Notes: generated by a model not told the origin, from the sequence alone. 64,000 bases of DNA from Basidiobolus meristosporus CBS 931.73 (GCA_002104905.1 MCFE01000484.1:1-64000); one strand, 5' to 3'; positions 664-59,469 are shown, counted from the stretch's first letter. A program made the numbers and translations.

Positions 664-1134
664 TCATTGCTTTCTTCCTACAAATTTCGGTGCCCTTTTG
701 CGCATCATCATAGGCCGGCCGAAGTCCTGAGTCCAGTAGCTCCCTTGTGGATCGTAGGCAATGCCAGTCTGGGTGAAGATGGGATCCAATATGTTGCGGC
801 GATGCTCTGGCGAGTTCATCCAGGCATTCATCACCGACACTGCATCCCCATACCCCGCTGCAACATTCTCCCCAATGTTGCTCCAGGGATAGCCTGTGGC
901 GCTGATTCTCTGGCCCAGAGTTGTGTTGGGCTCGTCATGAGTCATTTCATGCACGGTGGCCTGATACAGAGTGTGTCGTTCGGCAGCCAAGGTGAGTCTT
1001 GGGTCGATAGTGAGAGCTGGAGCGCCAACCAGGGCCCGTTGCTGATTCACGAGTGCGAGGAGTGTGTTCGGGTCAAAGGCGAGGGCTACCCCGGAGAATG
1101 TGAAGACAGTTGCGATCAGAGATAGAAGCTTCAT
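664..1134 (-). CDS. Secreted CAP/SCP-domain protein, bacterial (YkwD-like) type, 156 aa
   Basis: Signal peptide MKLLSLIATVFTFSGVALA; CAP motifs AAERH, MTH, RISATGYPW, IGENVAAGY, AWMNSPEHRRNIL, YWTQDF; intronless; TATA-like ATATAAAT upstream on the minus strand (~1183-1190). Confidence 0.92.
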   Translation of the reverse strand: MKLLSLIATVFTFSGVALAFDPNTLLALVNQQRALVGAPALTIDPRLTLAAERHTLYQATVHEMTHDEPNTTLGQRISATGYPWSNIGENVAAGYGDAVSVMNAWMNSPEHRRNILDPIFTQTGIAYDPQGSYWTQDFGRPMMMRKRAPKFVGRKQ

Positions 1135-1748
1135 TGCGGTAGAGTGCTGTATGGTTAGATATGGGGGAGGGGGCTCTGTGATATTTATATTTCATATGTC
1201 CTTGGGCTCTATGGTAACTTTACCAAGGAGTTGTTGGGATCGATTCCATCACGGAACTTACTCTCGGTCCAGACCTTTTGGCCCTGGAAGGTGAGGAACA
1301 TGGGAAAACCTCCTGGAATGATGAGAATGTTGAATCAGCACACTTAGCTCATGTCCTATAGTCGAAGGTGGATTAAAATGGGAATCTTTACGAGGGCTTT
1401 TCCATATCTGGCTGTTTCAGTTGTACACTCTTTCATTTGTTAGATCACTCCGAACCAATGGTATAGGAGTAATGTTGGGAAGTTAACAAGTGTCCCCTTT
1501 GGTACATCGTTATACCATTTAGAATATTCAGCACTCACATGGCTTTGTTTGAAATAAAGAGCCAAATATGCATCTACAGGCTGTAGTGCAGGAGCAACTG
1601 GATGTTGAACTTAGCTCTGATGGAATAGTAGATATCAACATTCCCCCCGATGTCGCTCCTGGATCAGTTTGTTGCACTGAGCCTCTAGCCCAGTATTGTA
1701 TTGGGCTTATTATGTGGCATTTGGCGAATGTATAATCATCAATGTTGT

Positions 1749-2990
1749 TTACTTGCCAGTGAAGGGCCAATCTCTATGTAAACTGTCATTGCATTGATCA
1801 CAAGCACTGATCCAAAGTCCGAATTCGGCTGCGGCTGAATTGTTGTTTCCTCGGTTGATGAACCTGCGTCTATCAGAATTGCAAAGCGCGCCACAGTACA
1901 TATTGAATGAAATTGGCACCAAGGCTGAGAATCACTTGGAGGTGATAGGCACCGAGATCAGACAGCTGACACATCTCTCAAACTCAACCATGTTTCTTCG
2001 AAGCAGATCTTCGCCTTGTGCAACACTGAGAGGAGGATGAATGTTGGCGCAACCAGTTGGGTCAGGGTGGCAGGCATACCCGTAGCCTACATTTTTGATG
2101 TCCACAGGGTCAATATAGAAATTGGGGAACCAGCCTTAAAAGCTCATCACTGAATCCAATCCTGCTTGGTTAATGTGCCCATTATTAAGCCCACCGTTTC
2201 CGCTGCCCTCGCCTTTGCACTTAGGGATCCCAGGCACATACTTACCGCCGGTCTCCACATATTTATTAAAGACCCAGTTGCCGTTGGTTAACTTGGCCGG
2301 TTCATTTGTTCCTTGGCACTCCATGGTCACTTTTCTCCATTACGGAGAGTTCCGATTTGGGGGTATCCAGTTCCCAGGCCTAAGCGGAAGCGTACACCAT
2401 TGTTGCTGATAGGAAAGGCGTTGTCACCGCTACTACCGCCATTATCGCATTTGGGTACTCCGGATACGAATTTGCTTCCAGACTCCGCATATTTGTCGAA
2501 TCCTCAGTTACCGCTGGTGAGTTTGTCCCAGACATTATACCCATTAACTGACTCCCCGGTTCCTTAACATTGGATGGTTACCCGGTCACCTTTTCTCAGG
2601 GTTCCTACTTGATAAAAGCTGGTTCCAGGACCTGATCGAACCCTCACGCCATCATCATTAATGTGGAAAGTGTTCCGGCCGTCACTTTTTCCGGTCTGGG
2701 AGCACTTGGGAATTCTGGCAACAAATTTGGTTCCAGTCTCTACATACTTATCGAAGACCCATTTACCATCTTAGAGCTTATCCCAATGTTTTATCCTCCA
2801 ATAGATTGACAAGCTTCTTGACATACAACGTCCACGTTACTTCCGGCTTACAATGATCCTACTACAGCATATTTGATTGCTGAGCCGACACGAGAATTCA
2901 CGCGATCATTAAGTGGGAAAGACTTGGCGGTTGCCGACGTAGCAGTGAGGAGTAGAGGAAGGATGACTCGACTCTCGCTGCGATGTTTAA
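1749..2990 (-). pseudogene. Pseudogene of a secreted 3x bacterial SH3b + GH24 (phage-type) lysozyme
   Basis: Manual minus-strand translation: hydrophobic leader (RVILPLLLTATSATA); three SH3b-like repeats (e.g. GVRVRSGPGTSFYQVGTLRKGDRVTIQC*GTGESVNGYNVWDKL...DKY); then HINQAGLDSVMSF*GWFPNFYIDPVDIKNVGYG...PPLSVAQGEDLLRR...FSALV..FN. Multiple stops and frameshifts. Ends are approximate. Confidence 0.85.
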
Positions 2991-3379
2991 CGAATATTCT
3001 CTTCAATATGGGTATTTGTACCTTCTCAAACGGAAATCGTAGCTGCTTTATCCGAAAATGTTGCAGCATTGGATCCTCATACTACTCAAGTCGGGTCACC
3101 AATTTGTGTTCTTGGGAAATGCGTACCAGGATTAGGGAATTCTAACCCTATGCAAATATCCGGAATACTGGTGAGTGGCACGGCATTTGATAACTGACAT
3201 TTCAGTTCCAGTAGGTATTTAACCGGGGTTACGCATGATTCTTTCGATACATTGTCTTTTTCTAGATACATTCAAGCTTATATACAACAGCCTGTTATAA
3301 AGCAAATGACATAATAAATGTATTGCATGCTGAATATTGCCGAAATGTGACACAAACTGCTATTTCAATCACTAAATAG

Positions 3380-3389
3380 TGTATATAAA
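3380..3389 (+). promoter_or_regulatory. TATA-like box upstream of the small Cys-rich peptide gene
   Basis: GTATATAAAG ~110 bp upstream of ATG 3491; a similar GTATATAAG on the minus strand at ~3277-3285 faces the lysozyme pseudogene. Confidence 0.45.
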
Positions 3390-3490
3390 GTCGAGCTTGG
3401 CGAAGACAGATCAGTACTTCAGTCGACCACTGCGTTCAAGGTACTGTTTGTTACCATTTTTCACAACTTCGCTACTAACTTGCGCTCTAG

Positions 3491-3712
3491 ATGAAATTCT
3501 CTCTCGTCAGTCTTTTTCTTGGTGTTTCTTTCCTTGCCGTTGCTCAAGCTGCCACCTGTCGCTGCTCTTACGGGGGTAGTGACTACACAAAGAGCTGCTG
3601 TGGCCCATCTGGTGGAAGCTACTCCAAGTCCAAATGCTCATTGAGCTCATCTAGCAAGGTCCAGAAGTTTGACAGATGTTGCCAAGGCTTTGGAGAATTT
3701 TCGGACTGTTAA
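3491..3712 (+). CDS. Small secreted cysteine-rich peptide (73 aa; ~53-aa mature, 8 Cys)
   Basis: Signal peptide MKFSLVSLFLGVSFLAVAQA; mature pattern C-x-C-x10-CC-x11-C-x13-CC-x8-C ending at the stop codon; intronless. Confidence 0.85.
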   Translation: MKFSLVSLFLGVSFLAVAQAATCRCSYGGSDYTKSCCGPSGGSYSKSKCSLSSSSKVQKFDRCCQGFGEFSDC

Positions 3713-6197
3713 TTTCGATCATCCACTTTCTTCCAAAATAAAAAGTTACTAAAACGCTCGCACACACGAAATTCTGGAATAATGATTTTATCAAAAAGCA
3801 TACCACATATTGCTACCAACTTCAAGGCCAACGTATCGACTGCTACTGGATCAGTCGCTTTCAAGCAATCACAGGTGATAGGAAAATGTATTTGGCATGC
3901 AAAATAATTAGTCAATCACTAGACTTGAACTTCATTTTAATTGGCTGCCGCTATGAGTAAGTATCCGCTGATTATCTCAATGAAATATTGGTTCATGCAA
4001 TACTTTTGATGATTTTTTATAGGTAAGGACTTAAGACGTTTTTATCTAGTACGTTGAGGACACTTGATTTACTCTCTTATCATCCAGCATTGCGTTGAAT
4101 GCTGTTTACTAGTATTCATCCAATAACAACAAGCGAAGATTTTTCACCCGACCGCATACATATTTTGATAGAATAGCTTGAATATTATAGGTTTATTTCA
4201 ACCACCAGTTGCTCTGGTTCAACACTTCAGCCCAGAAGTATCATATCTACAACCCATGTCCAAGCGTCTAAACATGTGCCTAAGTCTTGGGATTGTTACA
4301 TTCAATACATCCAATACCTGAATCTATTCGCTGAGAATCGCAATTGCAATCGCGCAAGATAGTGAGCATTTCAGGCCAATGTCCAACTGAGAAAAATTAT
4401 GCGCATGTTACACATGTGATGTGAAGTTTTCTTACGCCGCCATTTTCATACTCAAACTGACACACCAAAGTAAGAATACTATCTTACCTCAATGCTGAGA
4501 ACTAAACGACTAGTGTCACGCATTCGGATTCAAAGGTGGCACAAAGCACTTGATATAGCGATGAAGAATGCAATGTCGGGTAGAAAATCCAGTGATTAAA
4601 ATAGCAGGTTACATCGAACAATAGATATACTTCTCTCCGTTTACTGATTGATGTGATACAAACATTTACCCGAGACTAATGGGCCAATCTTGTCAGGACT
4701 GGTTGGTTATCTTGAAATAACAATTTTACATGCATTCAAATAGATTCAAATTTTATTTCTTCAATCGTGTATTGTATTTGAACTTTTCCATGGACCAAAT
4801 GGTTGGAGCATAGCGGGCATCCTCTTTGTCATTAGTAAACGAGACCAGACCTATCATTGGGTGGATGGTTGCTTTTAGAATAGAATGTTTATTTTCGGCA
4901 ATGCTCCCGTGAGTACAGATAAAAAAGCCTGCAGATTTTTCACCCTTAGATACCAAATGGCCTTGCCACGGATCTTACTTGCATCGATGTTCTAGCCAAA
5001 GCCTCGCACGACAACATCATTACATTCCATGTCAGCAAACAAGTAACACCAGCCTCCGTATTTGTCAAATTACGACAAAGGCTTGCCTTCTTAACCACCC
5101 ATTTAACAAGGTTTTGAGAATGTCACACCCGATAATATCCGGCTGGATTCACTGAGTGCCCATTTCAGGGCCTATACAATCCACAGCAAACCCGTCAACT
5201 CCTTTCGCACACACGCCGTACCAAGAGTTGAGATTCGTTCAATTGCACATTATACCAATGGGCGCCGTGCAGATCTCCTACAACATTAGGGGATTTGGCT
5301 ACTGAGTGAAAATTATCCCACCTTTTCTCTTGGAAATTGGTGCATCTACAGTTTGATGTTGTTACGACTGAACTTTGAAGAATTATGTATATAGAATGTT
5401 CCCGCTCTTTACTCCTAGGAAAGGCATAAATTATGAGATGTAGTGCACTGTTCGTATGTCCTTCGGGACCATAGGATCTGTCAAGTTTGTCATTCCAACA
5501 ACCCTGCAAGGACAGTTTGTACATTCTAACCGCTTGACTACTATTTACCAATTGAAACTAAAATGGAGTTTAACCCTAAGCGTCATTCCTCAACATCTCT
5601 ATCGCGTGTGCATGACTTGTGAATAGCTGCTACCAGACACTCTTATTACATAAGATTCCACAACAATGTGAACGCTGCTTGTCCCAGTATTGATAGAGGA
5701 CTCAATGCCAAGTACCATGTTGGTAATACAAGCACAACAGAGTAAACCAAACAGAAACAAGCTTGGCTAACTATTCTTACAGAATCAATATTGCCTTGTC
5801 TCTGTTTAACTAAAATTCAGAACTTTGTCCGTGGTGATAGTATGAAGTATTGAAGTAAAACATGGGATAGCCATCAAAGACACCAACGAACCTCAGATAA
5901 TTTGTATAATCTTTTTTCTCATTCGTACAATGGTTAAAAATATCTTCAAAAACTTTTTCGTCATCAGTGAAGATTCGGCAACCGACGGTCATATCCATGA
6001 AGATCTTACTGTCCTTACAGTCATGAAGTTACAAACATGCTTTAGCATGTAAGCCACCACTGAGTGAACAATATGGCGATGTCGAATAGTACAGCTATCA
6101 AGCGTAGAATATTCTTTGGATCGAAGAAACCAAAATACCTCTCCACGCTCAAAATTCTGTAGATCACTAAAGATGAACACATGTAACAGAAATACAT

Positions 6198-7249
6198 TGC
6201 CTAAATATGGCAATGGTCGACCCATGACACTATCTAGAAATAGAGTGCCGATCCACGACAAGATGACTTCTCCGTATATGGTAGGATCCTTGAAATCCCT
6301 CTCGATCTGAGAAGGTGAGCCAGATCCAAGTTGATTGGATTGAAAGTTGTGGAAGTCCCCTACCCAAGATTCCTTCACTTGTCGAGGATAGCGATCGAAT
6401 CCCAATCGCCATTTGGTTCGGCCACAGACTCTAGGCCTGAAATGGTAAGAGAGTTTGAATCCTTTGTAAATTGGTCTGCCCTTCCTCGGTTTTCCTCAGC
6501 TTTCCTCGGCTATATATTACGAGCCTCATGCCAAGGATCCAGCATCTTCATAACAGCTCAACAATCCAGTATGGTCAAGATCTCTTCTATCTTTGCTGGT
6601 GTCACTGTCGCTGCTGCTGGCCTTTTGGGCCTGGCTGTCCAGGCACTCCCTGCCTCAACCACGCCCAGCACTACCCCAAGTCAGACTAGCACTACAGAGG
6701 TGTCTGGACCCCATGTCAAGCTAGCCGCTCTGTCTGAGCTCGACAACGCCTGCTCACTACAGTTCCGCTTCGATAACGGTCAGTGCACAGACTGGGCTGA
6801 TGCCCGCTACTACCAACTTACTTGCCACCACACTCAGTGGTGGGGGAATGCCAAGACTTGGCCCGCAAGTGCTCGCAACACCGATGGCTGGGTTGTCTCC
6901 AACGAGCCACGAGTCCCCTCCATCATCGCCATCCAGCCTGGATACCAAGGGTGTGACTCCTATGGCCACGTCGCAGTCGTCGAGAGCATCAACGATGATG
7001 GAAGTGTTTACACCAGCAACTGGAACTACATTGAGAATGGACGCGGCGGTCCCTACATCACCACATACGTCAACTTCTGGCCCGGAGAAGGGGTCTCCTT
7101 CATCTGGTATGAATAGGAGAGATACCCAACAATGGAATATACCATTCAGCAATGCCGGCATATACCCAACAGAGTATTTACCCAGTAGTGTCATCAATTC
7201 CCCGATAAATAAATACTAAAATAGTAAAGTAATACGTTTTGCCAGTGTG
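6198..7249 (+). repeat. Segmental duplicate, copy 1 (~1.05 kb, contains CHAP gene)
   Basis: Matches 8218-9269 at a constant offset of 2020 bp; I counted about 7 substitutions, all transitions. Confidence 0.95.
6571..7116 (+). CDS. Secreted CHAP-domain peptidoglycan amidase/endopeptidase, copy 1 (181 aa)
   Basis: ATG 6571; signal peptide MVKISSIFAGVTVAAAGLLGLAVQA; Thr/Ser linker; CHAP motifs NGQCTDWA (catalytic Cys), WGNAKTW, YGHVAVVE (catalytic His), SNWN; intronless. Confidence 0.92.
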   Translation: MVKISSIFAGVTVAAAGLLGLAVQALPASTTPSTTPSQTSTTEVSGPHVKLAALSELDNACSLQFRFDNGQCTDWADARYYQLTCHHTQWWGNAKTWPASARNTDGWVVSNEPRVPSIIAIQPGYQGCDSYGHVAVVESINDDGSVYTSNWNYIENGRGGPYITTYVNFWPGEGVSFIWYE

Positions 7250-8217
7250 TTGTCAAAAAATGACTGCCTACATGATTACAGGCATCCAATAAGCAATTTC
7301 ACTAGAATTTGAGATTGAATGGTATGCTATCTGCAGCAGTGGGAAACGATAGGGGTAACCGTGATCTAGCATAACTGTTTGAGTGAAAGGGTGAGGTACT
7401 TGAAGGTAGGTAGGTAGATAGTGATCTACTTCTCTGCCAATCATGGTCAATAATCGTGGTGATGCGGAAGGGATAAGCGTAATTTATCAGGAATGCCGGT
7501 GTTCCATACCATTTGGTTCTGGTCTACACACGTTGAAAAGATATTCTGTTTAGAATCCAACTTGGCTATGCCTGCTTTGATCCTTTTTTGATGGTCATAT
7601 CACTCAGCAGCATGCGTTATGGTTTTAAACGTCAAAAGAATCGAGGTGGCAATGAGTGACTAGAGAAGTGTTCCCTCATCACTCATCAATCTATTGAGCT
7701 GATATTTTTCGTACTCTTCACTGAGGATTAATTGATTACGCCTTGACTTGGTGCGAACATCAACGTACGTATATGCTAACCACAAAATAAGTCACGACTT
7801 CATAATAATTTTCCCGTTTGAAGCTTACTTGTGTCGCTATTTTTGAACACTTCACCACTATGGGTAAGAGATAGTGATCGAAAGGCTCCGTCTTCGAATT
7901 CCACTCGGATGAAATGAACCACTTCTAATCTGTCAGTCATCATTCTCATAGCCTGATAGTAAGCCTGAGCTACCAATGAGAACTCCATACCCGAATTGCA
8001 TAGGGCTTTGGAGCCTCTATATTCATAGTCTAGACCTGAACCCAAGTTCCACAATGTAAGCTATTCGACTTGTTGAAATGCAGCTCTCAACAAGTATGAG
8101 GCTTGAGTAGTCTTCTATCAAGAATAGCAAGGACTGTGAGCTGCTTGGTGTGGGTGAGGGGAAAGGATGTTCCTTAATCGGAAGTACATATCTAGGTATG
8201 TACTATCTTGACTTCCG

Positions 8218-9269
8218 TGCCTAAATATGGCAATGGTCAACCCATGACACTATCTAGAAATAGAGTGCCGATCTACGACAAGATGACTTCTCCGTATATG
8301 GTAGGATCCTTGAAATCCCTCTCGATCTGAGAAGGTGAGCCAGATCCAAGTTGATTGGATTGAAAGTTGTGGAAGTCCCCTACCCAAGATTCCTTCACTT
8401 GTCGAGGATAGCGATCGAATCCCAATCGCCATTCGGTTCGGCCACAGACTCTAGGCCTGAAATGGTAAGAGAGTTTGAATCCTTTGTAAATTGGTCTGCC
8501 CTTCCTCGGTTTTCCTCAGCTTTCCTCGGCTATATATTACGAGCCTCATGCCAAGGATCCAGCATCTTCATAACAGCTCAACAATCCAGTATGGTCAAGA
8601 TCTCTTCTATCTTTGCTGGTGTCACTGTCGCTGCTGCTGGCCTTTTGGGCCTGGCTGTCCAGGCACTCCCTGCCTCAACCACGCCCAGCACTACCCCAAG
8701 TCAGACTAGCACTACAGAGGTGTCTGGACCCCATGTCAAGCTAGCCGCTCTGTCTGAGCTCGACAACGCCTGCTCACTACAGTTCCGCTTCGATAACGGT
8801 CAGTGCACAGACTGGGCTGATGCCCGCTACTACCAACTTACTTGCCACCACACTCAGTGGTGGGGGAATGCCAAGACTTGGCCCGCAAGTGCTCGCAACA
8901 CCGATGGCTGGGTTGTCTCCAACGAGCCACGAGTCCCCTCCATCATCGCCATCCAGCCTGGATACCAAGGGTGTGACTCCTATGGCCATGTCGCAGTCGT
9001 CGAGAGTATCAACGATGATGGAAGTGTTTACACCAGCAACTGGAACTACATTGAGAATGGACGCGGCGGTCCCTACATCACCACATACGTCAACTTCTGG
9101 CCCGGAGAAGGGGTCTCCTTCATCTGGTATGAATAGGAGAGATACCCAACAATGAAATATACCATTCAGCAATGCCGGCATATACCCAACAGAGTATTTA
9201 CCCAGTAGTGTCATCAATTCCCCGATAAATAAATACTAAAATAGCAAAGTAATACGTTTTGCCAGTGTG
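8218..9269 (+). repeat. Segmental duplicate, copy 2
   Basis: Near-identical to 6198-7249; separated from it by a unique ~970-bp spacer. Confidence 0.95.
8591..9136 (+). CDS. Secreted CHAP-domain peptidoglycan hydrolase, copy 2 (protein identical to copy 1)
   Basis: Same translation as 6571-7116; the two coding differences seen (CAC/CAT, AGC/AGT) are synonymous. Confidence 0.92.
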   Translation: MVKISSIFAGVTVAAAGLLGLAVQALPASTTPSTTPSQTSTTEVSGPHVKLAALSELDNACSLQFRFDNGQCTDWADARYYQLTCHHTQWWGNAKTWPASARNTDGWVVSNEPRVPSIIAIQPGYQGCDSYGHVAVVESINDDGSVYTSNWNYIENGRGGPYITTYVNFWPGEGVSFIWYE

Positions 9270-9546
9270 ATCCGTCTGACTTATTCAAATTAGAATATCA
9301 GTTTAGTGCTAAGATTTGCAGTTCTCATAAAAGATTCTCAAGGTGAATGAATACACATCTTCCACACCTTCCTCCAACGCTTTTTTTGACGTGAAATAGC
9401 CCGTTGCAAATCCCTAACCCTAAGTAGCACTGTATATGGCAATAGTCAACAAGAATGCGCATCTTGCTGTGAATGATTGGAAAACAAGTTGAAGGTGATG
9501 AATGTTTAATCGTAGTTGGCATGCAATATACTCTAGGCGAACCCTG

Positions 9547-10518
9547 CTAGTGAGATTGCCGAATTCCTTCCAGGGCCAATGCCTGTAAAGTCTGTGATAA
9601 GTTGTCCTGATCAACAGAGGAGTTTCCATTACTTGTAGAAGCAGCATCACTCTTGGGGATTAGAAGATCCCCTAATAGATCTGGTAATGCGGTTAGAAGG
9701 GGCGTCACATACAGAATATTCACCAAACTATATACCTTTAGATTTTTTGTCCTCCACCTTCTTGACTTCCGATAGCTCAAGCGCTGTTTCGGACAGCTTG
9801 ATTTTCAGCGTTGGATGCTTTTTGAAAGTGATTTGCCCACCCCATAGCCAGGTTGGAATTTCCTTCGGAATGCTGATTTCTGAAGTGAACCGCTCGATAA
9901 ATTCTGTTTCTTCCGAGCCTACCACTCCATCTCTCAGGTACCTGCACATGAAACGGTTGGTAGAAGCATCCAAGGCAGGTTTAAGCTATCTGTTTACCTC
10001 GCATATTCGGTCAAAGCTGATGGCACGCTGTAGAATTGCAGCTTGCGTAAACACATGACCACGACACCAGTAACCACTGAACCATCAATACAATGAAGAT
10101 AGAGAGGATGATATTCGGGGTTGATAATAATCTATAAGGCGATTCATGAGTAATTATCTATAGCCGTTCGAACCAAACCACTACCTCGAGGATTTGAACC
10201 ACCTTGGAGAAATTCAAGGGGACATTTTCTTTCGGCTTTTTGACGCGAATCATCATATTGATGATTCCGTGTTCTCTACAGAAGGTCACCAATTCCTGTG
10301 TTGGTTGATCCGGTATTAAAGATAGCACCGTCTTCAGTTTGAGTCTTGAGGAATGTTATCAAAAATACAAATACTACTGCTCAATAGGAGAGATGCACTC
10401 ACCGCTTTAAAAAACGCAGATTCCGCTCCTTAGGATAAGCTCCGCGAAATATGTTACTCTCAACTATACCATATCGAAAGGGGGGTACAATAGGTGGAAG
10501 AATACGATTTGCTTGCAT
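9547..10518 (-). CDS. OCA6: Siw14/Oca-family tyrosine phosphatase-like protein, Oca6-like (spliced)
   Basis: Reconstructed exons: MQANRILPPIVPPFRYGIVESNIFRGAYPKERNLRFLKR|LKLKTVLSLIP...|...HPLYLHCIDGSVVTGVVVMCLRKLQ...|YLRDG...; GT-AG introns. Confidence 0.8.
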
Positions 10519-10959
10519 AGGTGCACACAGAAGGAATATTCGCAGCAGTTAAACAGCTATCATGCACCACTAAGGCTAGCTAGCAAGCAAGCGGTGGTGA
10601 GAAAGTTAAGCAAATTTTATGGAAAACACACAATTCTGAATAAATTAGTATACAGGCTTTACTTGATTAGCAGAGAATTTTGAGGGACAAAAAAAGCTAG
10701 AAATAGGGGCACCACCGATCATCACAGAATAGAGGCCTCTCACCAATTTCCAACTCACCTTTACATTGCGAACTCCTGAGCTTCACGAAATACTCGTTGC
10801 TCTCAATTGCCCGCTTCTTCACACACAACCATTTGCCTTCTCGGTGTTTTTCGTGGGATTTTTCACTCGGCGGGGAAATTTAGAGTTTTGCAAGAGTCGA
10901 AATACGCCAGTTGTATTGTTTGACCGGAAATATTGATAATAAATAGCATAACAACCCCG

Positions 10960-13640
10960 ATGTCCTCTAACCCTACGTTTGGCACGCCTTTGATTCAAAC
11001 ACCCCTTGGATCTTCCGCGATACCTATCATCGCTCCTACCGAAGAGAACCAGGGCCAGAAAGAGGCAAAACGTCAGTGGTTACCTTTCAAATTGATTAGT
11101 GCTATTTGTTCGTGAATCTAACTCCCTTGATTAGCAAAGGCACCTTCCAGCACTCCTACCACTCCAAACACAAAGTCACGCACTTGTCGTAACGTGATTA
11201 TTCATGGGTACTGCAGATACGAAGGAAAAGGCTGCGAGTTTAATCATGATCTTAACGTATGTTTTCCAACAAACCGTATATAAACAACCGGTGTATTAAC
11301 CGCGGAACCTCCCCATCTAGTCCAATGCGCCGACTCCCGTTACCTCGCCCGAATCGTATAGCTCTTTCGTTGCCTTCTCACCAGGCTTCATCTGATCTAA
11401 CCAATGTTTTTGGTGATAGAAAGTCGAAACTTAGAATAACCTCACCGGCCTTCAATCCCACGGGAGCCCTTACCTCGGCCCTGAAATTTAACTCGCCAGT
11501 AGGTAGGGAATAGCTTGATGTTGCCGGCCATAGCGGTGACACACATCTAACCTAATATGTTGCACTCTACGTAGCCGTAGTTGAGAAGACACCAGTCAAC
11601 TAACGGACCCAGTGGCGTTGACTTTGAGACAGGGTATTGGACACCGTGGTCGATTTCACTTTCCAGTCATTAATTATCCATCTTCTCACGGAATAGAGCG
11701 CCTTACTATGCTCAGCCTGCCAATTCGGGCTATCATCCCTCAAACTCGAGTGTAAATCACCTGTCGGCCGACTTTGGCTCGATGGACCTGGACAACGGCA
11801 TGGTAAGTGCGCGTGCACCAATGTGAATCAACATCATCACCCAGCCAGCTTACCAACTACCATGCATGCAACGCTAGTCGGCGAACTACCCTCCGCTGGA
11901 GCTTCGATACCACCTGTACACCACACCACTTCCACACATCACCAATCTTCCGCCCAACCGCAAGACAATCCACTCGTTTTTCATGTCGGATAATTTACGC
12001 GAGGAGCTGCAGAGAAAGAACGAAGCGTCAATTCAATACTTGGATCGTATGTGTGGTTTATTTAGACTGACGGACTGCTCTCGCGTCTTGTTAATTCTCT
12101 CCAGCAGCACAAGACTCAGCACTACCTGCGGAGGTGCATGTGTACCATTCCCTGTATCCTCTAGACAGCCCCAATCAGGCCAAATCTACGCAGGCCTTTG
12201 GGTACCCTACCTCGGTGTACAAAGCAGCAAGCAGCATCGATGGGAAGCTCTACGTGCTTCGTCGAATCGAAGGTTCCTTTCTTTCCTGACCACCTTGATA
12301 GAGAGTGGCTAACCCCTTTCGGACGCTAGGCTACCGTTTGACGAATGAGGCAGCAATGTCGACCATCGAAAACTGGCGCAAGATAAGCCATCCGAACATC
12401 GTGTCTGTGCGCGAGGCGTTCACCACCAAAGCATTTGGCGATCACTGTACGTAGTTCCATCTAACCGACGGCCTTGCAGTAAACTGATTGATATGTTTAG
12501 CTTTGGTGTTTGTCTACGACTACCACCCGTGCTCCACCACACTGGCCGATCAGTACCTCCATCCCAACGCAATCCTCCCTTCAGCGAGGAACTCCCTCAG
12601 CGCGGACAACATCACCGAAGTCAAGTTTTGGAGCTTTGTTGTGCAGATAACCTCGGCACTCCGTACGCTACATGCAGGTGGCCTGGCAGCCTGTATCCTG
12701 GACCCAACCAAAATATTGATTACCGGAAAGAACAGGTACACTCCACCAAGTCTCCCGGGAAGCGCGTGCTAACTCAGTGTGTCCTTTAGGATTCGTCTCA
12801 ACTGTTGTGGGATCTACGACATGCTTTCATACGCCAGCACCAGAAACACCGCCCACTACCAGGTAGGTCAACCCCATGCCGACCCACCTCCCCACACGCT
12901 CACGTAGTCCACTTTCTAGCAAGAGGATTTGCTCCAGTTCGGCCAGCTGCTGACGTGCTTGGCATGCAACTCCTCCAGCGCGCTCGCCAACCTTCCCAAG
13001 TCCATCGACTTCATTGCCCGCCACTATTCTCCAGACGTCAAGAATCTGATCCTCTACCTCCTGAGCAAACCCTCCACGACCAAGAACATCGATGACATCA
13101 TCGGGATGCTGGGGCCCAAGATGCTGCTGGAGCTGAACCGCACCCACTAGTAAGCCAACCCTTGAATCGAGGCATCCCGATGCACGCATACTAACCCCGC
13201 AACCCGCTAGCTACAACGACTTTTTGGAAAACGAGCTGTCCACGGAGCTGGAGAACGGCCGGATTGCTCGACTGATGATGAAGTTGGGCTTCATCAATGA
13301 AAGGCCAGAGTACGTCATATCCGCGCATTGTATCGCCGCACATTAACTGAGAGAAACTTTGACATTGACTAGATTCGATCTGGATCCCAGTTGGTCCGAA
13401 ACCGGAGACCGCTATTTGATCAAGCTGTTCCGAGACTATGTCTTCCATCAGGTGGATGAGAACGGGAACCCGGTGTTGGATATCGCCCACGTTCTGTCCT
13501 GCCTGAACAAGCTGGATGCCGGTCTGGAGGAGAAGATCATGCTGATGTCGCGGGACGAGCAGTCTTGTTTGATTGTGAGCTACAAGGAGCTGAAGGATTG
13601 CGTCCAGCAGGCGTTCTCCGACCTCACCAGACGCCATTGA
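10960..13640 (+). CDS. PAN3: PAN2-PAN3 deadenylase subunit PAN3 (multi-exon)
   Basis: CCCH finger [21 protein letters not shown]; PAM2-like [10 protein letters not shown]; pseudokinase ([25 protein letters not shown]); C-terminal [10 protein letters not shown]...[25 protein letters not shown]...LNKLDAG. Confidence 0.96.
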
Positions 13641-15096
13641 AGATTTTTCCGTTCTAACCTTCATGTAATTAAGAAAACACGCCAACATTTCATGGAAATA
13701 TTTGGTAAAAACCCCCAAAAACATCAATAAATCTTCGGAAGATAGCAATTATCCGCACGGCCAGGAGTCCATCTCGGCTCTAGCGGCAAAGATGGCCCCC
13801 ACTCCTGTGGAATTCCTTGTTGGAGTGGTTTTGGTGGAATAAGACCCTTAAATGGGGGCGTCCACCAATGGCCGACCGCACCTGGAATGGGTTTGTTTGG
13901 ACCATCTCCAATTTGTTACTCCTTGTCGATGTCTAGGCCGGCATCGATTGCGTTATCGGAAGGCCATACCATTGTGTGGGATCGGTGAACGGTGATCCGT
14001 GGAATCTCCTCCCTGATCCCTGGTTGCTAACGTAAAATACGGAAACCTTTGAGGTAAATATGTGCTACGCATCTACTGACTAATCTTAAATAAGCTAGCA
14101 ACTTAATTCCCATTTACATTTACCTTGAACTTACACACCAGATCGACCCAAGAATGCACTTGTCATGTTAAATATCACCGGATCAACCAAGTGAAGAACA
14201 GTCGGAAGGCTTATGTGCTTCACATACCTCACCGACCATGAGCCTTCTCTAGTCGCCGGCTGCTCTCAGCAAGAAGCAAGGCGAATGTGCGCAAACTGGT
14301 TTTGCTTGTTATTACAACTCGTTGATACTCCACGTGGTTTCCTGGATTTGACTGGATTACAAATCCATTCTTTTAGGAAGCGCTGACAGATGAATTGCAT
14401 ATATGGCTAAACAAGCTTCCTAACCCAGCAACAACCCAAATCCACATTGATGGCTACGGATATGGCCAAGCATCCCCCAGAGATCAGAGTCAGTATACGG
14501 AAAGTTTACCCGCGGGTCAAAAATTACCAAATGCCCATCGAATTGGGAACAATGGTCGCTTTTGGCTATATTAAGGAGAGAAACAAGCATATCCAGAGGC
14601 CAAACCGGGCTAAACAATTAAAATGTGAGTGGTGGCCCAGGTTCGAGGCTATGGTGATGGTAAAACAATATAGTTGGGAATTCTCCTCATTTACCAGAAT
14701 TAGCAACTGGTGCAAAGCAAGAGCAAGCACAAGTAGCAGGGCAAGTGCAGGAGCAAGTGCAAGCGTAACTGAAAGCGTAACTGAAAGCGAAAGGGCCCGT
14801 GGAAATGCAAAGGTCTACACCGCACCGCTACGTCGCAAGGCCATCGTTCTTGGGCAACCAGTCCATGCGTATTGCGAATAAAGTTCGCATCAGCGTGGAT
14901 TCATATCTCGACCTGATCAGGCAATGATTCTTTAGGGCAGAAACTTCTAAGACCATTCGATAGCACATGATTTGCTAGGTGCGGCGGGCCAATGACCATC
15001 CGGCGGTGGCTCCTACATAAGGCGGGCGGCTGGCGATGAACGTCGCATTCCTTCACCTTCTGTACATTTATTCAAAGATTAGATTCATGAGCATTG

Positions 15097-16113
15097 ATGG
15101 CATTACTAATACATGACACCAACGATCTTGAGCAGATCGAACTCGCCATCACTCCATACTTTCGGATCATTTCGATGGGGATTTTAGTCATAGTGATCGT
15201 GTGTGCGATCATGATTTGGATTTGGCGAAGACAGCTCACCCATCGAACCTCCTACAACCTCGCCTTCTGGAGTCTCGTATGCATTCTTATTTACCACGCG
15301 ATGGGCTTTTTCAAGACCACGTCCACCCAGCTCTCCATCTGCACTGTAGTCCCCTTCTTCGAAAACGTCGCCAAGCTATCGGCCGTCTTCATCACTGGAT
15401 GCATTGCGTACAACCTCCGGCGAGTCTTCATCAAGAAAATGTCGGTGCCCCCCAAGCTGGTCCGTGGCTATATCCCTCTCTCCATCCTCTTCGCCGTCAT
15501 CGTCAGCATCCCCGGGCTGGTCTACTCGCTGGACCGGGACATCTGCTGGCTCAAGGACAAATCCAACATCTGGCCCATGATCTATTGGTGGATCACCTCC
15601 GAGGTGTGGATGCTCATTGTGCTGACCTACTGCCTGGTCATCGTGATTGTGGTCTTCAGAATCATTCATCAAGGCAATCGCGAAATCAAGCGACTGCTGA
15701 GGAGACCAGATGGAAGCGATGGCCAGCCGCCAGTGGTGCGCCAACGTAGCAGGCAACTCAATCAGGCTGCGGTGCGCATCATCATGTATCCTATAGTACC
15801 CATCCTCAGCTTCACCCCCAGCCTGGTCACCTTCACCATCCAGATGATCCAGTTGGTTGGCCACCACATGCACAGCGCGCGTTATCAGGAGATCATCCAA
15901 AACTGCACTCTGGCTGCCGATTTCATCAGCTCTTGGACCGGGATATTCGCCGGGATCGCGTTCATGTGGGACCCGGTCGTGACCACGGTTATTATGGAAA
16001 TCAGGGTCAAATATGGCTGGGCCGACGGTCCCGAGGCCAACAATCAAAAGCCGGAAATACAAATAGACGAAAGCGGTACCTTCCGGATTAGTAGCACCAT
16101 GCCTATTATGTAA
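15097..16113 (+). CDS. 7-TM G-protein-coupled receptor (Git3/cAMP-receptor-like)
   Basis: Intronless ~338-aa ORF with seven hydrophobic segments, IAYNL after TM3, basic third intracellular loop, RIIMYPIVPIL in TM6. Family assignment is inferred. Confidence 0.8.
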   Translation: MALLIHDTNDLEQIELAITPYFRIISMGILVIVIVCAIMIWIWRRQLTHRTSYNLAFWSLVCILIYHAMGFFKTTSTQLSICTVVPFFENVAKLSAVFITGCIAYNLRRVFIKKMSVPPKLVRGYIPLSILFAVIVSIPGLVYSLDRDICWLKDKSNIWPMIYWWITSEVWMLIVLTYCLVIVIVVFRIIHQGNREIKRLLRRPDGSDGQPPVVRQRSRQLNQAAVRIIMYPIVPILSFTPSLVTFTIQMIQLVGHHMHSARYQEIIQNCTLAADFISSWTGIFAGIAFMWDPVVTTVIMEIRVKYGWADGPEANNQKPEIQIDESGTFRISSTMPIM

Positions 16114-16287
16114 GTATGGAACTGCCTTCTTCCCTGTAAATATCATCACCCATCCCAACCCCAATATACATAAAACTGTACAATTAATAAATCGCTCGAG
16201 CTTTATTTGCTTAAGTTACGTAAGTTTATTGTATATATCGCCCTCGTCACGTAGATTAGCGTATTTACACACTTCTATTTACATTTT

Positions 16288-16763
16288 TCATGGCGCCGGC
16301 ACTGGATTCGGTTTGGTTACTGGTCGTTGTACGAACACCCTGACTTGTCTCTCCATGTGGACCTTTGCCAGCTGGTAATCTCTCGAATACTCGGCATCGC
16401 CGTAAGCGCGTAGTGTGTAGTGGTCCTCAGGGCTGTCGGCGGGGAAAGCCCATTGAAAGTCGCCAGCCCCCTGGCTGATCAATTGGGTGATGTTTTGAAA
16501 AAGGCTCGACCCATTCTTACGCAAGATATCCAATGCCACGCTGGAGCTATGAAGAGATCCCGAGATTTCTATTTCCAAGGAGATGTTAAAGGGCCGCCCG
16601 GCCACGATGACCGAGTAGGGCAGAGGCTTGGTTATCACGATTTGATCTACACATACGAAGTTAGATGGGCTCCCGCCAAAGAAGCTACCTGCAGGCTCGT
16701 ACCTCCGGTTACCCCAGCAATCACCGAGATGTAGGTCAGCGCGAGAACTCTGAGCCGATTCAT
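16288..16763 (-). CDS. Small secreted protein, possibly Kre9/KNH N-terminal Ig-like fold (2 exons)
   Basis: Signal MNRLRVLALTYISVIAGVTG; intron GTACGA...CTAAC...TAG restores frame to DQIVITKPLPYSVIVAGRPFNISL...DHYTLRAYG. The fold call is tentative. Confidence 0.65.
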
Positions 16764-17961
16764 TACGTTTAGGTTAGGGTAATCAGGTATTGGGACAATT
16801 TTAAGGTTAATAAACGTGGAATAAATCTCCGTGTCTGCCATAAACATGGAATCCCCGGCATTGTATGCCTTATACTATAACCATTGTCCCTGTACGTCTA
16901 TTCAAAATTGTGTTTAAAATTTTCACGAATTTCATTGTCTAGATTATTGAAAAAGTTTGCTTATCTTGATTTCCACGACCCATGAGATATCTTCGGAGAA
17001 AAAAATCCTTTATCAGGGGACATGATTGGTGGTATCTCCCCATCACCCATGTCTAAGAATAGCATAAAATGGATGCACCCAGTGTTCTGTCTCTCACCTT
17101 CAGTACATTGGTCTGCATATTGCATATGGTAAGTGACATTTCCTCAGTTCGTTGGTTCCTTTCCTTATGATGGTGTAATTTGCGTTTGAAAGGCAACACT
17201 CCGCGGTGTCTTGCCGGACACCACATGCGGGTTTGCTCACATGAGACTACTTTTTTGCTGAAGATCAACCTACAATTCCAATCCAGAATTTTCTATCCGC
17301 AACCTAACACTAACCGACTTATTTCAGTCTGTAGGACGCATGCAGCGAAAGTCCCTCATCTGTAAATATGAATGTAAGTACTGACTCCGACTTTCATACG
17401 AAGTCAAGCGTCCGTCCAGTGATTAAAAAAATTCGCTACCCTGAATTTCCATGTGGATCTCTTATTTATCACCAAGATCTCTGAGGACAGACCTTGACTT
17501 CCCATTCTCTATCTTTCAATTCATTTCACTTACCCACTATTTCCTAGGATTGCCAGGGGTTGTTTGTAAATAAAATAAATGAAATTCAACCATATCACGT
17601 GTCCTTTCGCTTTTGTACTCTGTAATTTAACAAACAAATCCATATTGGGAATGAGGCGAATGGTGTAGACGCCAAGAGACGGGATTGTTTTGTGGTTTTG
17701 AGGCGATTTCATGCAAATCCCACGAACTCGGAGTTCTAAATATTTAAGCTATTCAAACGTGATGGTGGACTGATGAGCAAGGGGAATGTAGGAGTGCTTG
17801 GGATGTATCAAATTAGTATGTAGGAGCGACATCCCACCGAGGGTATAAATAAATTGACTTGCACGCCGGACCAAGGGATCTACATCCGACACATTGAATC
17901 AAACCGTCCTATAAATATATTTCTCTTCGCCAGTATCCCTAATCTTGTACATTGTTGAGCC

Positions 17962-18870
17962 ATGGCATTTCGCTCGTATGATGATGAACAGCTATTCTAT
18001 TTCCCCTATGAGATTGGGAAGACAAAGCAGAACATGGATTCGGTGGTGTATTCAGGTGAATACTCCCCTCATCGTTGTGTTATATGAACATGATTTAATT
18101 GTGCCAACTTGTAGAACAATATTCCACCGAGGTTCCGGGATTCGCCTTTGATCCACTATCTCTACCAGCGGAATTCTTCCCTGCGGATATGGGCTATTCC
18201 TCACTGCCAGAAGCCTCTCCAGAGTCATCCACCGTGTCCGAGACATTCATGTCCGACTTCTCCGAATACACGCAAGAGATTTTGGACCAGCTGTCTACTG
18301 CTCCCACAAAAAGGAAGAGAAGCGAGCCTGAGGTTCTGAAAGAAACGCTGGAGGAGCTCTCGGGGAACGGCCCTTCCAGGTAAGCAGGATTGAAGATACC
18401 TGCTCCTCAACAGCACTAAAGCCCACTTTACCACAGCCCTAGCCCACCCGGGTCGCTATCAAACGCCGAGATCAGACGGCAGATCCACATACAATCGGAG
18501 CAAAAGCGCAGAGCCCAAATCAAGGACGGCTTCGAGGAGTTGAAGTGCCACCTCCCAAACTGTAGCAACAAGAAGATCAGCAAAGCCGCCATACTTTACA
18601 AAAGTAAGTCTCAGGCGTGTGCTGATGGCGCTCCAGCTGCTTGCTAACCTTGCACCACTCCACAGCCGTCCAGTATCTGCAGCACCTCAAGAACATCCAG
18701 ATCGCTTTGATCGGCCAGCTTGAGCATATGGGGGCCGAGAACGAACGTCTTAAACAGTAAGTGGCTTGATGATCGGCACGGCGTCAGTTACTAAGTCTCT
18801 TCGGAACAGGTTTTGTGACGCAGCCCTTCAGAAGCAGAGCTTAGAAAAGGTCTACTCGATCGGACTCTGA
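17962..18870 (+). CDS. bHLH-leucine zipper transcription factor (Max/Mlx-like, spliced)
   Basis: RRQIHIQSEQKRRAQIKDGFEELKCHLPNCSNKKISKAAILYK|TVQYLQHLK...ENERLKQ; canonical introns. Confidence 0.9.
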
Positions 18871-29824: not shown

Positions 29825-31109
29825 CCCTCGGCGGTCCCCTGCCCCACTTGACCCAACCCCCACCCCAACCGCCCCTTCTTTCCCCGCCCGCATCCTGCGT
29901 TGCCGTGTAGATTGCGAACACCCCCTCCCCACTCGCACCCGACCGTTTGATTCCTGGTGGCTCGTAGGAGCCCCTCGTTGCATCGAATCTCTTCCAGCTC
30001 TTCTTCCAGGTAACGCACCCAACCGGGCAAATCTCCCACGAACACCCTCCCCCAACCGGGATGCCCGAGCGGTCCCAGCCAGCCGAATCGGGGCCGGTGT
30101 CAGCGGCCGGGTCCGCGTCCCCACCCCCACCCTCACCCTCGTCCACGTTCACATCACCTTTGGCCAAACCAGGCTTCTAGTCTAGTCTCGGTCGAACGCA
30201 TTCAGTACACAACCCTACGGTTCGTAATAAAGTTCTTTGCCCCGTAAATTCTGTCCCTGATCTTTCACCAGGTGTTGCGGGAGGTCGATGGTCGTGTCGT
30301 GTCGTGGCGTGGTGGGTGCTTGCCCATATAGGTTATCGGGGGGGGGAGTTGAAGATTCGGGGAGATCCTCATCGGTGGTTCAAAAAGGAGAAGGAGGTAG
30401 TAGGGCGGAGACGGGGACGAGGGCGGGAGCGGGAGCGGGAGCGACAACAGGAGAAGCTGGTGGTACCGCGTGTGTCCATCCGAGAATCGTGCGCTGGAAA
30501 CCCGATCGGATCAAGGGGATCTGTTGGTGTCAGGTCGCCTTCCAGTCCATCTCCAGTGACTTCTCAAGTCTGAGCCTGTAGACGTCGGATTGCCCATTTT
30601 CCAAGCCCAAACTCCGGCCCAACCGGAAGCTCAAACCCAATCTCTCGGGATCCTGGTGCCGGATTAGGGGAGGCTGACGTCCGTGCGGTGGACCCGGGAA
30701 GGACGCTGGCCCAGACCCCATGGAGTCCATCGGGTGGACTGGTGGGTGCTCTGCAAAGTCGTGCCCCACCCACACCAGACGCGCTATCCCCATTGGTTTG
30801 GCGCTCAAGGTTTCACCGGGACTCGGTGGGTTCATGGTCGTCCTCATCCCCTCCAGCGGGAATGCTCATCCATTGGTTAAACGGCTTTGGCACAATCTTG
30901 GCATGTATTGAATGTTCCTATGATGGTGTCTTGACAAAGGTCCATGTACCACACCCCACACCCCATGCTTCATATACATTACATGCTACCAGCATCCTAG
31001 GAGCCCACCATCAAGCATAGCCCTGTTCACTAACATTGGGAGAACAGGTAGATTGTGTGGCTTTCACCCAACAATTCATTGAATGTCCAAGTGGTATTTG
31101 TGCTTTCAC

Positions 31110-32930
31110 ATGGTCCAGGCAAGGCAACCATGTAGAATATGTTCAGGAAGCTCCCAAGAGCATGCAAGCAAACCTTGGGGGCCTTTCAACAACTTTGAGG
31201 ATTTTCATGTCCAGTGTACCTGATATTCTGGTGAAAGGTTCAAGGTGAATCCCATTCCAGAATCAGGGCTATGTACTCAAAGGTTCCTAGGCCACAATCC
31301 AAGTGACTAAGCCAAGTGAATGTTTAGGAGTGATCACAAAATTTTCAACACCATGCCACTTGCAATTCCTGAATGGGGAGCTTCTTGAGGATGTGTATAT
31401 GGTTCAACCTTATGGGGTTGTTGACAAACATAGCCCCCATTTGGTCTGCAAGCTCCAAAAGTCCCTATGCAGCCTCAAACAATCCCCAAGACCTTGGAAT
31501 GCAGGAGAGACTCTTATTTGATGCCACCAAGTCTCCAGAGTTGCTCTCAACTGTTTCAATTTTGTAATCACACCTAAATATTCATTTGACTTATTCACTT
31601 AGATCATAGTCTGCAATGCTCAGAGAACTCTTGCCAAGCTCCTTTTTGGAACATGCCTAGAGTATATTACCAGAATATCAGGTACCCTGGAAATGAAGGA
31701 TTGCCAAGTTGTCCCAACTGCCCCAAACTTTGCACACATTTTTTGGGACATTTCAGGGCATGTTTGGTGTTAGTTGTGCCAAAGCCATGTAAAAGTGCAT
31801 GTGTTGCATTTGCATACAGTAAATTATCCAGTGAAAGCTCCCATAAGTACTGCGGAGATGTCAGAGGTGATCTTGAATCCAAGCAGATTATGTCGCTTTT
31901 GTTGTATGAGTTTTGGAGATATTAAGAGTATTTAGGAGAACCAGTAGATTATGCATTTATTACTTAATGACTTATTGAATGTAAAAGTGGTATTTATACT
32001 TTCATGTGATCTTGGCAGAATAAGCATGAGCAATATGCTTAGGAAGGTCCCAAGTGCTGCAATATTCTGAGGAGTATTGGAAGTGATGTGGAGAACTAGA
32101 GGATTTACATGTTATTCACTTTTAAATTTATTGATCAAAGGTATGGTATTTATACTTTTGATAACATAGAGCATGCAGATGAGTAAAGTTTGTTAAGGTA
32201 GGTCCCTAGAGTATGTGTGCAAAGTTTGGGGGCTTTTGGATAACTTTGAGAAAGATTATAATCTGTACCTGATAATCTGGTGTAAATATTCTAAGTAATA
32301 CTCAACAAGATATTTGTTCAGGACAGAATGCTAATCAAAGAATAAGATTTATGTGACCATGCTTGCATGAATATTTAGGTGACAACTGTTGTAAAAATTT
32401 GTATTTCCACCTAAATATTCACCTGACTTAGTCACTTAGATCATTACCTTCAAATCGTAGAGAATACTGACCAAATTCCTTGTTGGGATTTACTTAGAAT
32501 ATTTACCCAGAACATGAAAATTCTCAAAGTTGCCCAAACAGCCCCAAACTTTGCGCACATGCTCTTGGGACCTTCCTTAACCTATTCTACATGTTTGTAA
32601 TGCTAAGACCAGGTAAAAGTATAAATACTACTTTTACATTCAATAAATCATTAAGTGAAAACCACATAATCTACTTGTTCTCCCAATCACTTCCAATATC
32701 TCCAAAACTCTTACAACAACAACTTGTTAATTACAAGACCAAGAGCATGTGCGCAAAGCTTGAGTCTGTTTTGACAGCTTTGAGAAATTTCATGCTTTTG
32801 CGCATAATGTTTTGGTGAGAATATCCTAATTTAATCAAAACAAGGAGTTTGGTCAGAATTCTCAAATATTTGTAGGTAATGATCCAAGTGACTAAGTTAT
32901 GTGAGTATTTAGGTGCAATTACAAGTCTTT
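31110..32930. repeat. Cluster of fold-back-like repeats: at least 5 copies of a ~250-350-bp unit in alternating orientation
   Basis: Shared motifs CACCTAAATATTCA.C.GACTTAGTCACTTAGATCAT and CCCCAAACTTTGC.CACAT at ~31110-31345(-), 31560-31780(+), 32190-32385(-), 32405-32600(+), 32740-32930(-). Confidence 0.7.
31350..31500 (+). mobile_element. Ty1/Copia reverse transcriptase fragment lying between inverted arms
   Basis: [17 protein letters not shown]...[19 protein letters not shown]. Confidence 0.85.
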
Positions 32931-33099
32931 ACATCACTCCAACTCTACCAAATACCCAAATCAACTAGTCCTAATAGCTATCTGGGATATTCAGTTTTGT
33001 CTGCAGTCATTTCATCTGTATGACAGTTAACTACTCTAGCTAAGTGCTCTACTATAGCCTCACATGAAGTAATGTCTTATATCCATATGCCAAGTTCTA

Positions 33100-58885: not shown

Positions 58886-59469
58886 ATATATCTATTTCTG
58901 TCTAATAAGGATCTGCTGATTCATTTGCTGACTAATGTTATCAATATGATAGTTAATATTGATATACTGATAACCTAAACATATAACTAATTGGTTTGAC
59001 TGAAAATCGATATAACTTAAACATTCAAGCAACAGTTCATGACACTATATTGACTATCTTGGTATTTCTATACATGAAACCAAGTCTTCATGTAGCAACT
59101 GAGCTCTCCTACATTAACATATTAAATCCCATAGATTTTGCATTATGTGGCACAATCTTGCACACTCTGGCACAATATGACACAATGAGGTTGGTACACA
59201 CAATTGCATTATGTGCATAATCAGATATCATTATTGAGGCTGGTAAAATCCATTACTTGGATATGTTTCTTTAATATGAGTGGAACTAAGTGCATATCAC
59301 AATATAAGCTACACTGATACTTACAATTGTGGTTACCATAACTCCAATTGGATGGTGTGTCCATGACTGATTGGTCTAAAAGTATCTAGAGGCTCTTGGC
59401 TCTCAATTAGCTCATTGACCAGCACACAAGCTGCGTGATTCACCACCAAATATCCCATTTTGCCTATTG

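Follow-up and report, generated by a model that had tools for sequence, protein, structure and literature searches.

How did a lysozyme sequence, two CHAP hydrolase genes, a CAP gene, and a cysteine-rich peptide gene come to lie side by side in a fungal genome? The locus occupies positions 664-9269 of a 64,000-nt stretch of Basidiobolus meristosporus CBS 931.73 (MCFE01000484.1:1-64000, assembly GCA_002104905.1), which is called the window here. A first-pass annotation of this DNA had proposed a candidate horizontally acquired antibacterial island, and all of the features that it listed (CAP, SH3b-GH24, cysteine-rich peptide, and two CHAP genes) are present where it placed them. The reading that we favour is a different one: this is probably a gene-poor, fast-changing Basidiobolus stretch in which four secreted-protein families of separate origin happen to adjoin, and not a co-transferred island. 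According to this explanation, the Basidiobolus lineage would have acquired the CHAP family once, from a soil bacterium resembling Ktedonobacteria, with later multiplication in tandem arrays, and the YkwD-type CAP gene, together with a relic next to it, would represent a second, separate bacterial acquisition that was likewise expanded. The lysozyme would be a dead copy of an SH3b-GH24 muramidase family widespread in fungi, and the peptide, which contains eight cysteines, would belong to a family found only in Basidiobolus.

Origin and predicted function of the CHAP proteins

The two CHAP genes encode identical 181-amino-acid proteins whose score with the Pfam CHAP family (PF05257/peptidase C51) is 60.8 bits (cut-off 26; E 1.8e-16). 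Among 5.8 billion proteins, a word-based search identified 37 Basidiobolus cluster representatives (20 from B. meristosporus and 17 from B. ranarum), which puts the number of paralogs in the two public genomes at 37 at least; the other CHAP matches in that search were bacterial or unnamed metagenomic sequences, and none was named as another fungus. When bacteria and archaea were scanned with one genome per species, 317 CHAP relatives were found, and the best 80 of the 317 all belong to Ktedonobacteria or other Chloroflexota, at 41-61% identity (mostly 50-58%) across the 115-residue domain. A maximum-likelihood tree of 128 CHAP domains, for which a distant Macrococcus CHAP served as the root, unites the 36 Basidiobolus rows in one clade (Shimodaira-Hasegawa-like approximate likelihood ratio test, 100) that is nested within Ktedonobacteria as the sister of Dictyobacter (support 91). 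The alignment has only 118 columns, hence the deep forks of the tree are weak; what it does make clear is the single origin of the Basidiobolus CHAP sequences and their nesting among bacteria.

The residues expected of a working enzyme are conserved. In particular, Cys72 and Asn152 are invariant across 50 fungal and bacterial CHAP sequences, His133 is nearly invariant (at least 90%), and Glu138 is nearly invariant as well. The AlphaFold2 (AF2) model has a predicted local distance difference test (pLDDT) score above 90 over most of residues 61-181 and adopts a papain-like alpha+beta fold. Its top Foldseek matches are 5t1q, 2k3a, 9eum, and 4olk (probability 1.00), with the CHAP domain of a Staphylococcus aureus amidase (5t1q) and those of phages in the lead; in sequence as well as fold, the solved structures nearest to it are those of staphylococcal cell-wall amidases and lytic CHAP domains from phages. 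Moreover, the ratio of nonsynonymous to synonymous substitution rates (dN/dS) against B. meristosporus is 0.07-0.08, which indicates strong purifying selection.

From sequence and model we infer that the CHAP proteins are secreted, cleave amide or peptide bonds of peptidoglycan, and are used in dung, gut, or soil to combat bacteria or digest them. The fungal signal peptide, which takes the place of the long N-terminal extension, with its hydrophobic stretch, of the bacterial relatives, would direct the protein out of the cell (signal peptides were called by eye throughout, without a predictor, as hydrophobic N-termini followed by small residues). A Ser/Thr/Pro-rich linker would carry the Cys-His papain-like domain, which would cut either the MurNAc-L-Ala amide or the peptide bonds of stems or cross-bridges; bacteria would thus be weakened or lysed, for competition or food. 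It is unlikely that the secreted CHAP and CAP proteins are not antibacterial and instead act on the animal host, on its immune sensing (e.g., by trimming peptidoglycan fragments), or on amides outside peptidoglycan. The CHAP fold does include glutathionylspermidine amidases (3a2z, 2io7), bacterial YkwD-type CAP proteins are without established activity, and Basidiobolus inhabits the guts of amphibians and reptiles (PMC7466969); however, the closest solved relatives of the CHAP domain are the wall-cutting enzymes named above, and the expansion to dozens of secreted proteins accords with an external target that is diverse. The Basidiobolus proteins stand in public proteomes as "Peptidase C51 domain-containing", and a literature search found no mention of CHAP in Basidiobolus, nor any with Entomophthorales terms.

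A very recent CHAP duplication or conversion

The two CHAP genes are embedded in a 1052-bp direct repeat, each unit of which comprises the coding sequence, 373 bp upstream, and 133 bp downstream. The copies are 99.3% identical, with seven differences, two of which fall in the coding sequence and are both synonymous. Because copies within the B. meristosporus CHAP arrays (three to six genes) are 88-95% identical to one another, compared with 99.3% for the pair in the window, the latter appears to be the outcome of a very recent duplication or gene conversion; both copies would have the same promoter region. The birth of a CHAP gene and the high turnover that had been read from the window are thus upheld by the pair and by the arrays, respectively.

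The 968 bp between the repeat copies show no similarity to the flanks at an offset of 2020 bp. Plain tandem duplication of a 2020-bp unit is ruled out, as the spacer resembles neither flank at that offset; the repeat-spacer-repeat layout fits either an older array that underwent recent conversion or an insertional copy. In both sequencing runs of one sample, k-mer depth over the spacer region (7220-8269) is 56-58, compared with approx. 119 for the unique flanks (5000-6855 and 9240-10999). As a lead, only half of the genome copies may thus contain the second CHAP copy and the spacer, which would be heterozygous or polymorphic among nuclei, and the one-copy form would arise via recombination between the two CHAP repeats. 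Within a six-gene CHAP array on another B. meristosporus contig (L001, MCFE01000090.1), a 4.3-kb segmental duplication (8028-12344 and 13148-17463, 92.6% identity) was observed, each copy of which holds two forward genes and one reverse gene.

The CAP gene and its relic

The CAP open reading frame (ORF) scores 70.3 bits against the Pfam CAP model (cut-off 21.1; E 3.3e-19). The NCBIfam model for spore YkwD (TIGR02909) is matched over positions 6-125 of 127 with 68 bits versus a cut-off of 171, and the protein is, by these scores, a relative of that subfamily and not a member. A search for related proteins yielded 13 Basidiobolus representatives, and all other matches were bacterial or metagenomic proteins of the YkwD type; the named bacterial relatives belong to Chloroflexales, Pseudonocardia, and Nocardioides (33-52% identity). 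In the PDB, the CAP domain matches the bacterial SCP proteins 4ifa, 4h0a, and 4d53, and no eukaryotic CAP protein at E<=0.01. In the CAP tree, the 14 Basidiobolus rows, including the one from the window, form a single clade (100) among bacterial and metagenomic YkwD-type CAPs, and the nearest rows are metagenomic. These sequence comparisons support a bacterial origin of the gene, with nearest relatives other than the eukaryotic PR-1/Pry/CRISP proteins.

The protein is 95% identical to a B. meristosporus homolog (P0056), and its dN/dS against B. meristosporus is 0.06-0.16. Low ratios in both families suggest retained function in CHAP and CAP, to which the intact catalytic residues and the predicted fold add in the case of CHAP. 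The CAP gene and the end of the lysozyme pseudogene flank a relic with 38.7% identity over 62 amino acids to the adjacent CAP protein (tblastn, E 1.4e-5). It is probably a decayed tandem copy of the CAP gene; tandem CAP copies exist in B. meristosporus.

A dead copy of a fungal SH3b-GH24 muramidase

The lysozyme sequence consists of three repeats of an SH3b domain plus linker, with a period of approx. 250 nt, followed by the lysozyme domain. Its pieces exceed the Pfam cut-offs for SH3_3 (28.1 bits) and for Phage_lysozyme (PF00959; 25.9 and 25.7 bits versus 22.3). Alignment with intact homologs (P0119, P0118, and P0117) reveals at least seven in-frame stops and two frameshifts, and the stop at 2136-2138 falls at the position that the catalytic Glu occupies within the F-E-G motif of those homologs. 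The gene death proposed in the first-pass annotation is therefore real.

The origin assigned to this gene requires revision. The GH24 piece is 72% identical to P0117 of B. meristosporus in a profile search and 60% identical over 120 amino acids by tblastn. When a 66-amino-acid piece was compared with 1.84 billion representatives, 62 matches were obtained, and all 14 named sequences among the top 20 are eukaryotic: Basidiobolus, five genera of Glomeromycota, the chytrid Rhizophlyctis, the lichen fungus Lobaria, two oribatid mites, and the protist Platysulcus. The SH3_3+GH24 architecture is common to B. ranarum and three Glomeromycota relatives, with the SH3_3 matches of the latter lying below the Pfam cut-off. 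The best PDB match of the piece is 8b2s, a "GH24 family muramidase"; this is presumably the enzyme of Trichophaea saccata, which has an SH3-like domain for wall binding (PMC10394673). An intact B. ranarum SH3b-GH24 paralog (L081, JASJQH010006921.1, 10001-10903) contains one or more introns and lies amid Erv26, Cu/Zn-SOD, F-box, and kelch genes. A recent bacterial or phage origin of the GH24 gene is ruled out by the wholly eukaryotic set of named near relatives and by this intron-bearing paralog; judged by its sequence relatives, GH24-SH3b is a long-resident and widespread fungal family (Glomeromycota, chytrids, Ascomycota).

Other copies may be decaying too. A B. ranarum GH24 remnant (on L082) holds an in-frame stop, and the "partial" B. 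meristosporus P0117 departs from the GH24 consensus in mid-domain; by sequence, both may be on the way to loss. P0117 (L080:9703-10447, MCFE01000608.1) has SH3b-like sequence just upstream of its gene model, and the window copy still fits the consensus where P0117 diverges from it; P0117 may represent either a wrong gene model or a decaying copy. GH24 lysozymes from assemblies of the oribatid mites Medioppia subpectinata and Oppiella nova (P0123, P0126, P0130, and P0138) lie near the fungal clade, and one of them is fused to an RlpA-like DPBB domain. Such sequences could have been transferred into mites, or could stem from fungal DNA contaminating the assemblies.

A Basidiobolus peptide with eight cysteines

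The 73-amino-acid peptide ORF has a hydrophobic N-terminus and eight cysteines in a mature part of 53 amino acids. It matches no Pfam or NCBIfam family, and one homolog was found, B. ranarum P0186 (E 2.5e-22), which is 63-66% identical and keeps all eight cysteines; the mature part is more conserved than the signal peptide. Atlas scores were at most 0.82, and the AF2 model (pLDDT 55) was unusable. On the strength of this conservation pattern, the ORF is taken as a real, Basidiobolus-restricted orphan gene.

One block or separate arrivals

The top matches of CHAP, CAP, GH24, and the peptide alike come from Basidiobolus (B. meristosporus CBS 931.73 and B. ranarum). The best amino acid identities in B. 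meristosporus and B. ranarum, respectively, are 86% and 71% for CHAP, and B. ranarum CAP reaches 81%. At the nucleotide level, the window is 82-89% identical to the B. meristosporus loci compared, with a synonymous divergence (dS) of 0.27-1.0; some of these pairs may be paralogous, which bears on both the identities and the dS values. As far as these sequences tell, the CHAP and CAP transfers are old, being common to B. meristosporus, B. ranarum, and the genome of the window.

Beyond this genus, the families part company. A single-donor island is ruled out by the separate trees and relatives of each family; each of the four families has its own history, which excludes a single transferred block as their source. 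Three of the four families do have domains widely found in bacteria and phages, and none of the genes has introns, as expected if one bacterium or phage had delivered them together. Nevertheless, such a delivery is very improbable: the nearest relatives differ among the families, the peptide has no bacterial relative, and the other Basidiobolus loci compared show no linkage of the families. Moreover, the GC content of the feature (0.44-0.47) lies within the range over the whole window (0.37-0.56) and is not anomalous, no mobility genes or flanking repeats were found at the locus, and the CHAP duplication is the sole repeat detected. The claim that bacterial-type domains had been acquired thus stands for CHAP and CAP, both of which are nested among bacteria, and falls for GH24, whose nearest named relatives are eukaryotes, mostly fungi. 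That they arrived as one island is contradicted by the different relatives of each family, the orphan peptide, the unremarkable GC content, and the lack of linkage in the loci compared.

Across the loci compared from B. meristosporus and B. ranarum, CHAP is not linked to CAP or GH24, and the four families are not found together. Six CHAP genes lie in 9 kb beside a retroelement and an eEF3-like gene (L001), three lie beside trypsin and MAP65 genes (L084), and one lies near an MFS transporter and a P450 gene (L083). CAP genes elsewhere occur as tandem or dispersed pairs beside choline kinase or peroxiredoxin genes. The CHAP pair of the window looks like a separate array that happens to adjoin the other genes.

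Two adjacencies weigh against a purely fortuitous gathering. On a B. ranarum contig (L082, JASJQH010008607.1), an uncalled GH24 remnant (1071-1220) lies approx. 800 bp from a homolog of the peptide (2008-2220), in a relative orientation opposite to that in the window. On the contig with the intact SH3b-GH24 paralog (L081), the N-terminus of a CAP gene (18137-18271, at the contig end) is located 7.2 kb downstream of it. As both adjacencies, GH24 with the peptide and GH24 with CAP, are found again in B. ranarum, part of the CAP-GH24-peptide arrangement may be old and ancestral rather than the product of pure chance. The flanks of the window show no synteny with the B. meristosporus loci compared, apart from transposon-like matches at 31-33 kb and 52-60 kb, and the orthologous site was not found among these loci; no RNA run containing the stretch was found. 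On the same L081 contig, an alginate-lyase-domain gene (14491-15859) was observed 3.6 kb downstream of the SH3b-GH24 gene.

The recurrent adjacencies also speak for a functional, co-regulated antibacterial locus, in which the families were brought or kept together by selection and are switched on together upon meeting bacteria. Consistent with such a locus, every intact gene encodes a small secreted protein, and bacteria-induced clusters in Coprinopsis cinerea provide a precedent (PMC6461984). However, the other CHAP arrays lie amid unrelated genes (trypsin, MAP65, MFS transporter, P450, and eEF3), the lysozyme member is dead in the window, the GH24 remnant and the peptide do not have the same relative orientation in both species, and the search for RNA runs returned none with this stretch; on balance, co-regulation seems improbable. 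Its most elaborate form is likewise doubtful: in a gut fungus, Ktedonobacteria-derived CHAP, CAP, and the eight-cysteine peptide would be induced together and act synergistically, and unequal crossing-over would adjust CHAP copy number (one or two, possibly still segregating in the isolate). Separate families that happen to adjoin, in a neighbourhood that may be partly old, remain the explanation that we favour.

Genomic setting and assembly

The features of the locus are collected in Table 1. In all three intact gene types the reading frame is open from ATG to stop, and over their full length they align with genes annotated as intronless in other Basidiobolus genomes, as the first-pass annotation had supposed.

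Table 1. Coordinates of the features at positions 664-9269 of the window.
Feature	Position	Strand	Basis
CAP/SCP gene, intact, intronless, 156 amino acids	664-1134	-	Pfam CAP
CAP-like relic (probable decayed CAP copy)	1625-1801	-	tblastn
SH3b(x3)-GH24 muramidase pseudogene	about 1752-2990	-	Pfam on pieces and alignment to intact homologs
Eight-cysteine peptide gene, intronless, 73 amino acids	3491-3712	+	ORF and B. ranarum homolog
CHAP repeat copy 1	6198-7249 (coding sequence 6571-7116)	+	Repeat finding, Pfam CHAP
Unique spacer, 968 bp	7250-8217		Between CHAP repeat copies
CHAP repeat copy 2	8218-9269 (coding sequence 8591-9136)	+	Repeat finding, Pfam CHAP

The bacterial-type domains adjoin intron-rich genes, a juxtaposition that could also result from bacterial contamination or a chimeric assembly join. 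This is the least probable of the explanations considered. The same families occur on contigs of 24-185 kb amid eukaryotic genes in both B. meristosporus and B. ranarum, and the proteins carry eukaryotic-style signal peptides where bacteria have an N-terminal extension. In an independent read assembly (Logan; probably of the source sample), contigs of 3.2 and 6.0 kb, both with a depth of approx. 119, join unique flank to the CHAP repeats; the larger of them (6017 nt) extends from position 9240 into the intron-bearing flank. The eukaryotic-gene contigs of other assemblies and the independent contigs that span the joins rule out contamination and a chimeric join, and the faulty assembly that had been named as a possible refutation is not seen, since short reads assembled independently bridge the joins between flank and CHAP.

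In the right flank, one exon-sized piece was inspected (10158-10328); it matches Y_phosphatase2 (profile positions 36-87 of 165) and fits an intron-split OCA6-like gene. No telomere repeats were found within the 64-kb window. Further to the right, positions 31000-33000 and 52000-60300 give translated matches to unannotated parts of two B. meristosporus loci (L002 and L080, MCFE01000608.1) that look like a shared repeat family or transposon, and an ORF of 1305 amino acids is present at 53095-57012 on the minus strand.

Comparison with known systems

In Basidiobolus, 2-5% of genes are candidates for horizontal transfer from bacteria; they are mostly intronless, have host-like GC content and codon usage, and are embedded among fungal genes (Tabima et al. 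2020, PMC7466969). With candidates so dense and a whole genome scanned, it is not surprising that several such families occur in one stretch. The CHAP and CAP genes of the window fit this description, and the main text of that study makes no mention of CHAP, lysozyme, or CAP (PMC7466969). The composite island adds little to this picture, as its parts have separate histories and one member is dead; the interest of the locus lies mainly in the CHAP family.

The first-pass annotation had recognised no such cluster as described in fungi, which is wrong in kind. Secreted SH3-like GH24 muramidases have been characterised in fungi, including that of Trichophaea saccata (PMC10394673), and in Coprinopsis cinerea, bacteria-induced genes for lysozymes and cysteine-rich peptides form loose clusters (PMC6461984). 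Like the family represented in the window, the T. saccata enzyme and C. cinerea LYS1-3 combine a secreted wall-binding module with GH24. The copy in the window differs in being a pseudogene with three SH3b repeats, whereas its intact relatives in B. ranarum and Glomeromycota show one recognisable SH3_3 domain.

The Basidiobolus CHAP proteins share their domain, including the Cys and His residues, with bacterial and phage CHAP hydrolases (PF05257, MEROPS C51) such as S. aureus SAOUHSC_02979 (5t1q), the CHAPK domain of phage K LysK, and the CHAP domain of the phi812 hub; the predicted model superposes on bacterial and phage CHAP structures at 2.6-3.5 A over 110-120 aligned columns. In contrast to these, the Basidiobolus copy is a fungal nuclear gene, its product combines a signal peptide with a Ser/Thr/Pro linker and lacks a recognisable wall-binding domain, and it belongs to a set of dozens of paralogs in tandem arrays. 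The nearest relatives, from Ktedonobacteria (Thermogemmatispora, Dictyobacter, and Ktedonobacter), are mostly 50-61% identical over the 115-residue domain. They have an N-terminal extension of approx. 100-150 amino acids whose hydrophobic stretch may serve as a membrane anchor, whereas the fungal proteins have a short, cleavable-looking signal peptide.

The borrowing of bacterial wall-cutting enzymes to fight or eat bacteria is a recurrent theme among eukaryotes (ticks, with their transferred dae genes, Trichomonas, and fungal GH25 and GH24 enzymes). Bacterial peptidoglycan hydrolases have likewise been co-opted as NlpC/P60 proteins in Trichomonas (bioRxiv 10.1101/320382) and through transfers of GH25 lysozymes (PMC4241558). 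Co-option as such is already known; no paper was found on the CHAP expansion in Basidiobolus. A CHAP family from Ktedonobacteria, expanded to dozens of secreted paralogs, is a well-supported added case in an early-diverging fungus that lives amid dense gut bacteria, and its proteins could supply new lytic enzymes. As in the earlier cases, a bacterial wall-cutting enzyme was acquired, given a secretion signal, and duplicated; what sets the Basidiobolus case apart is the CHAP family itself, the Ktedonobacteria donor, the zoopagomycete recipient, and an activity that is, for now, predicted.

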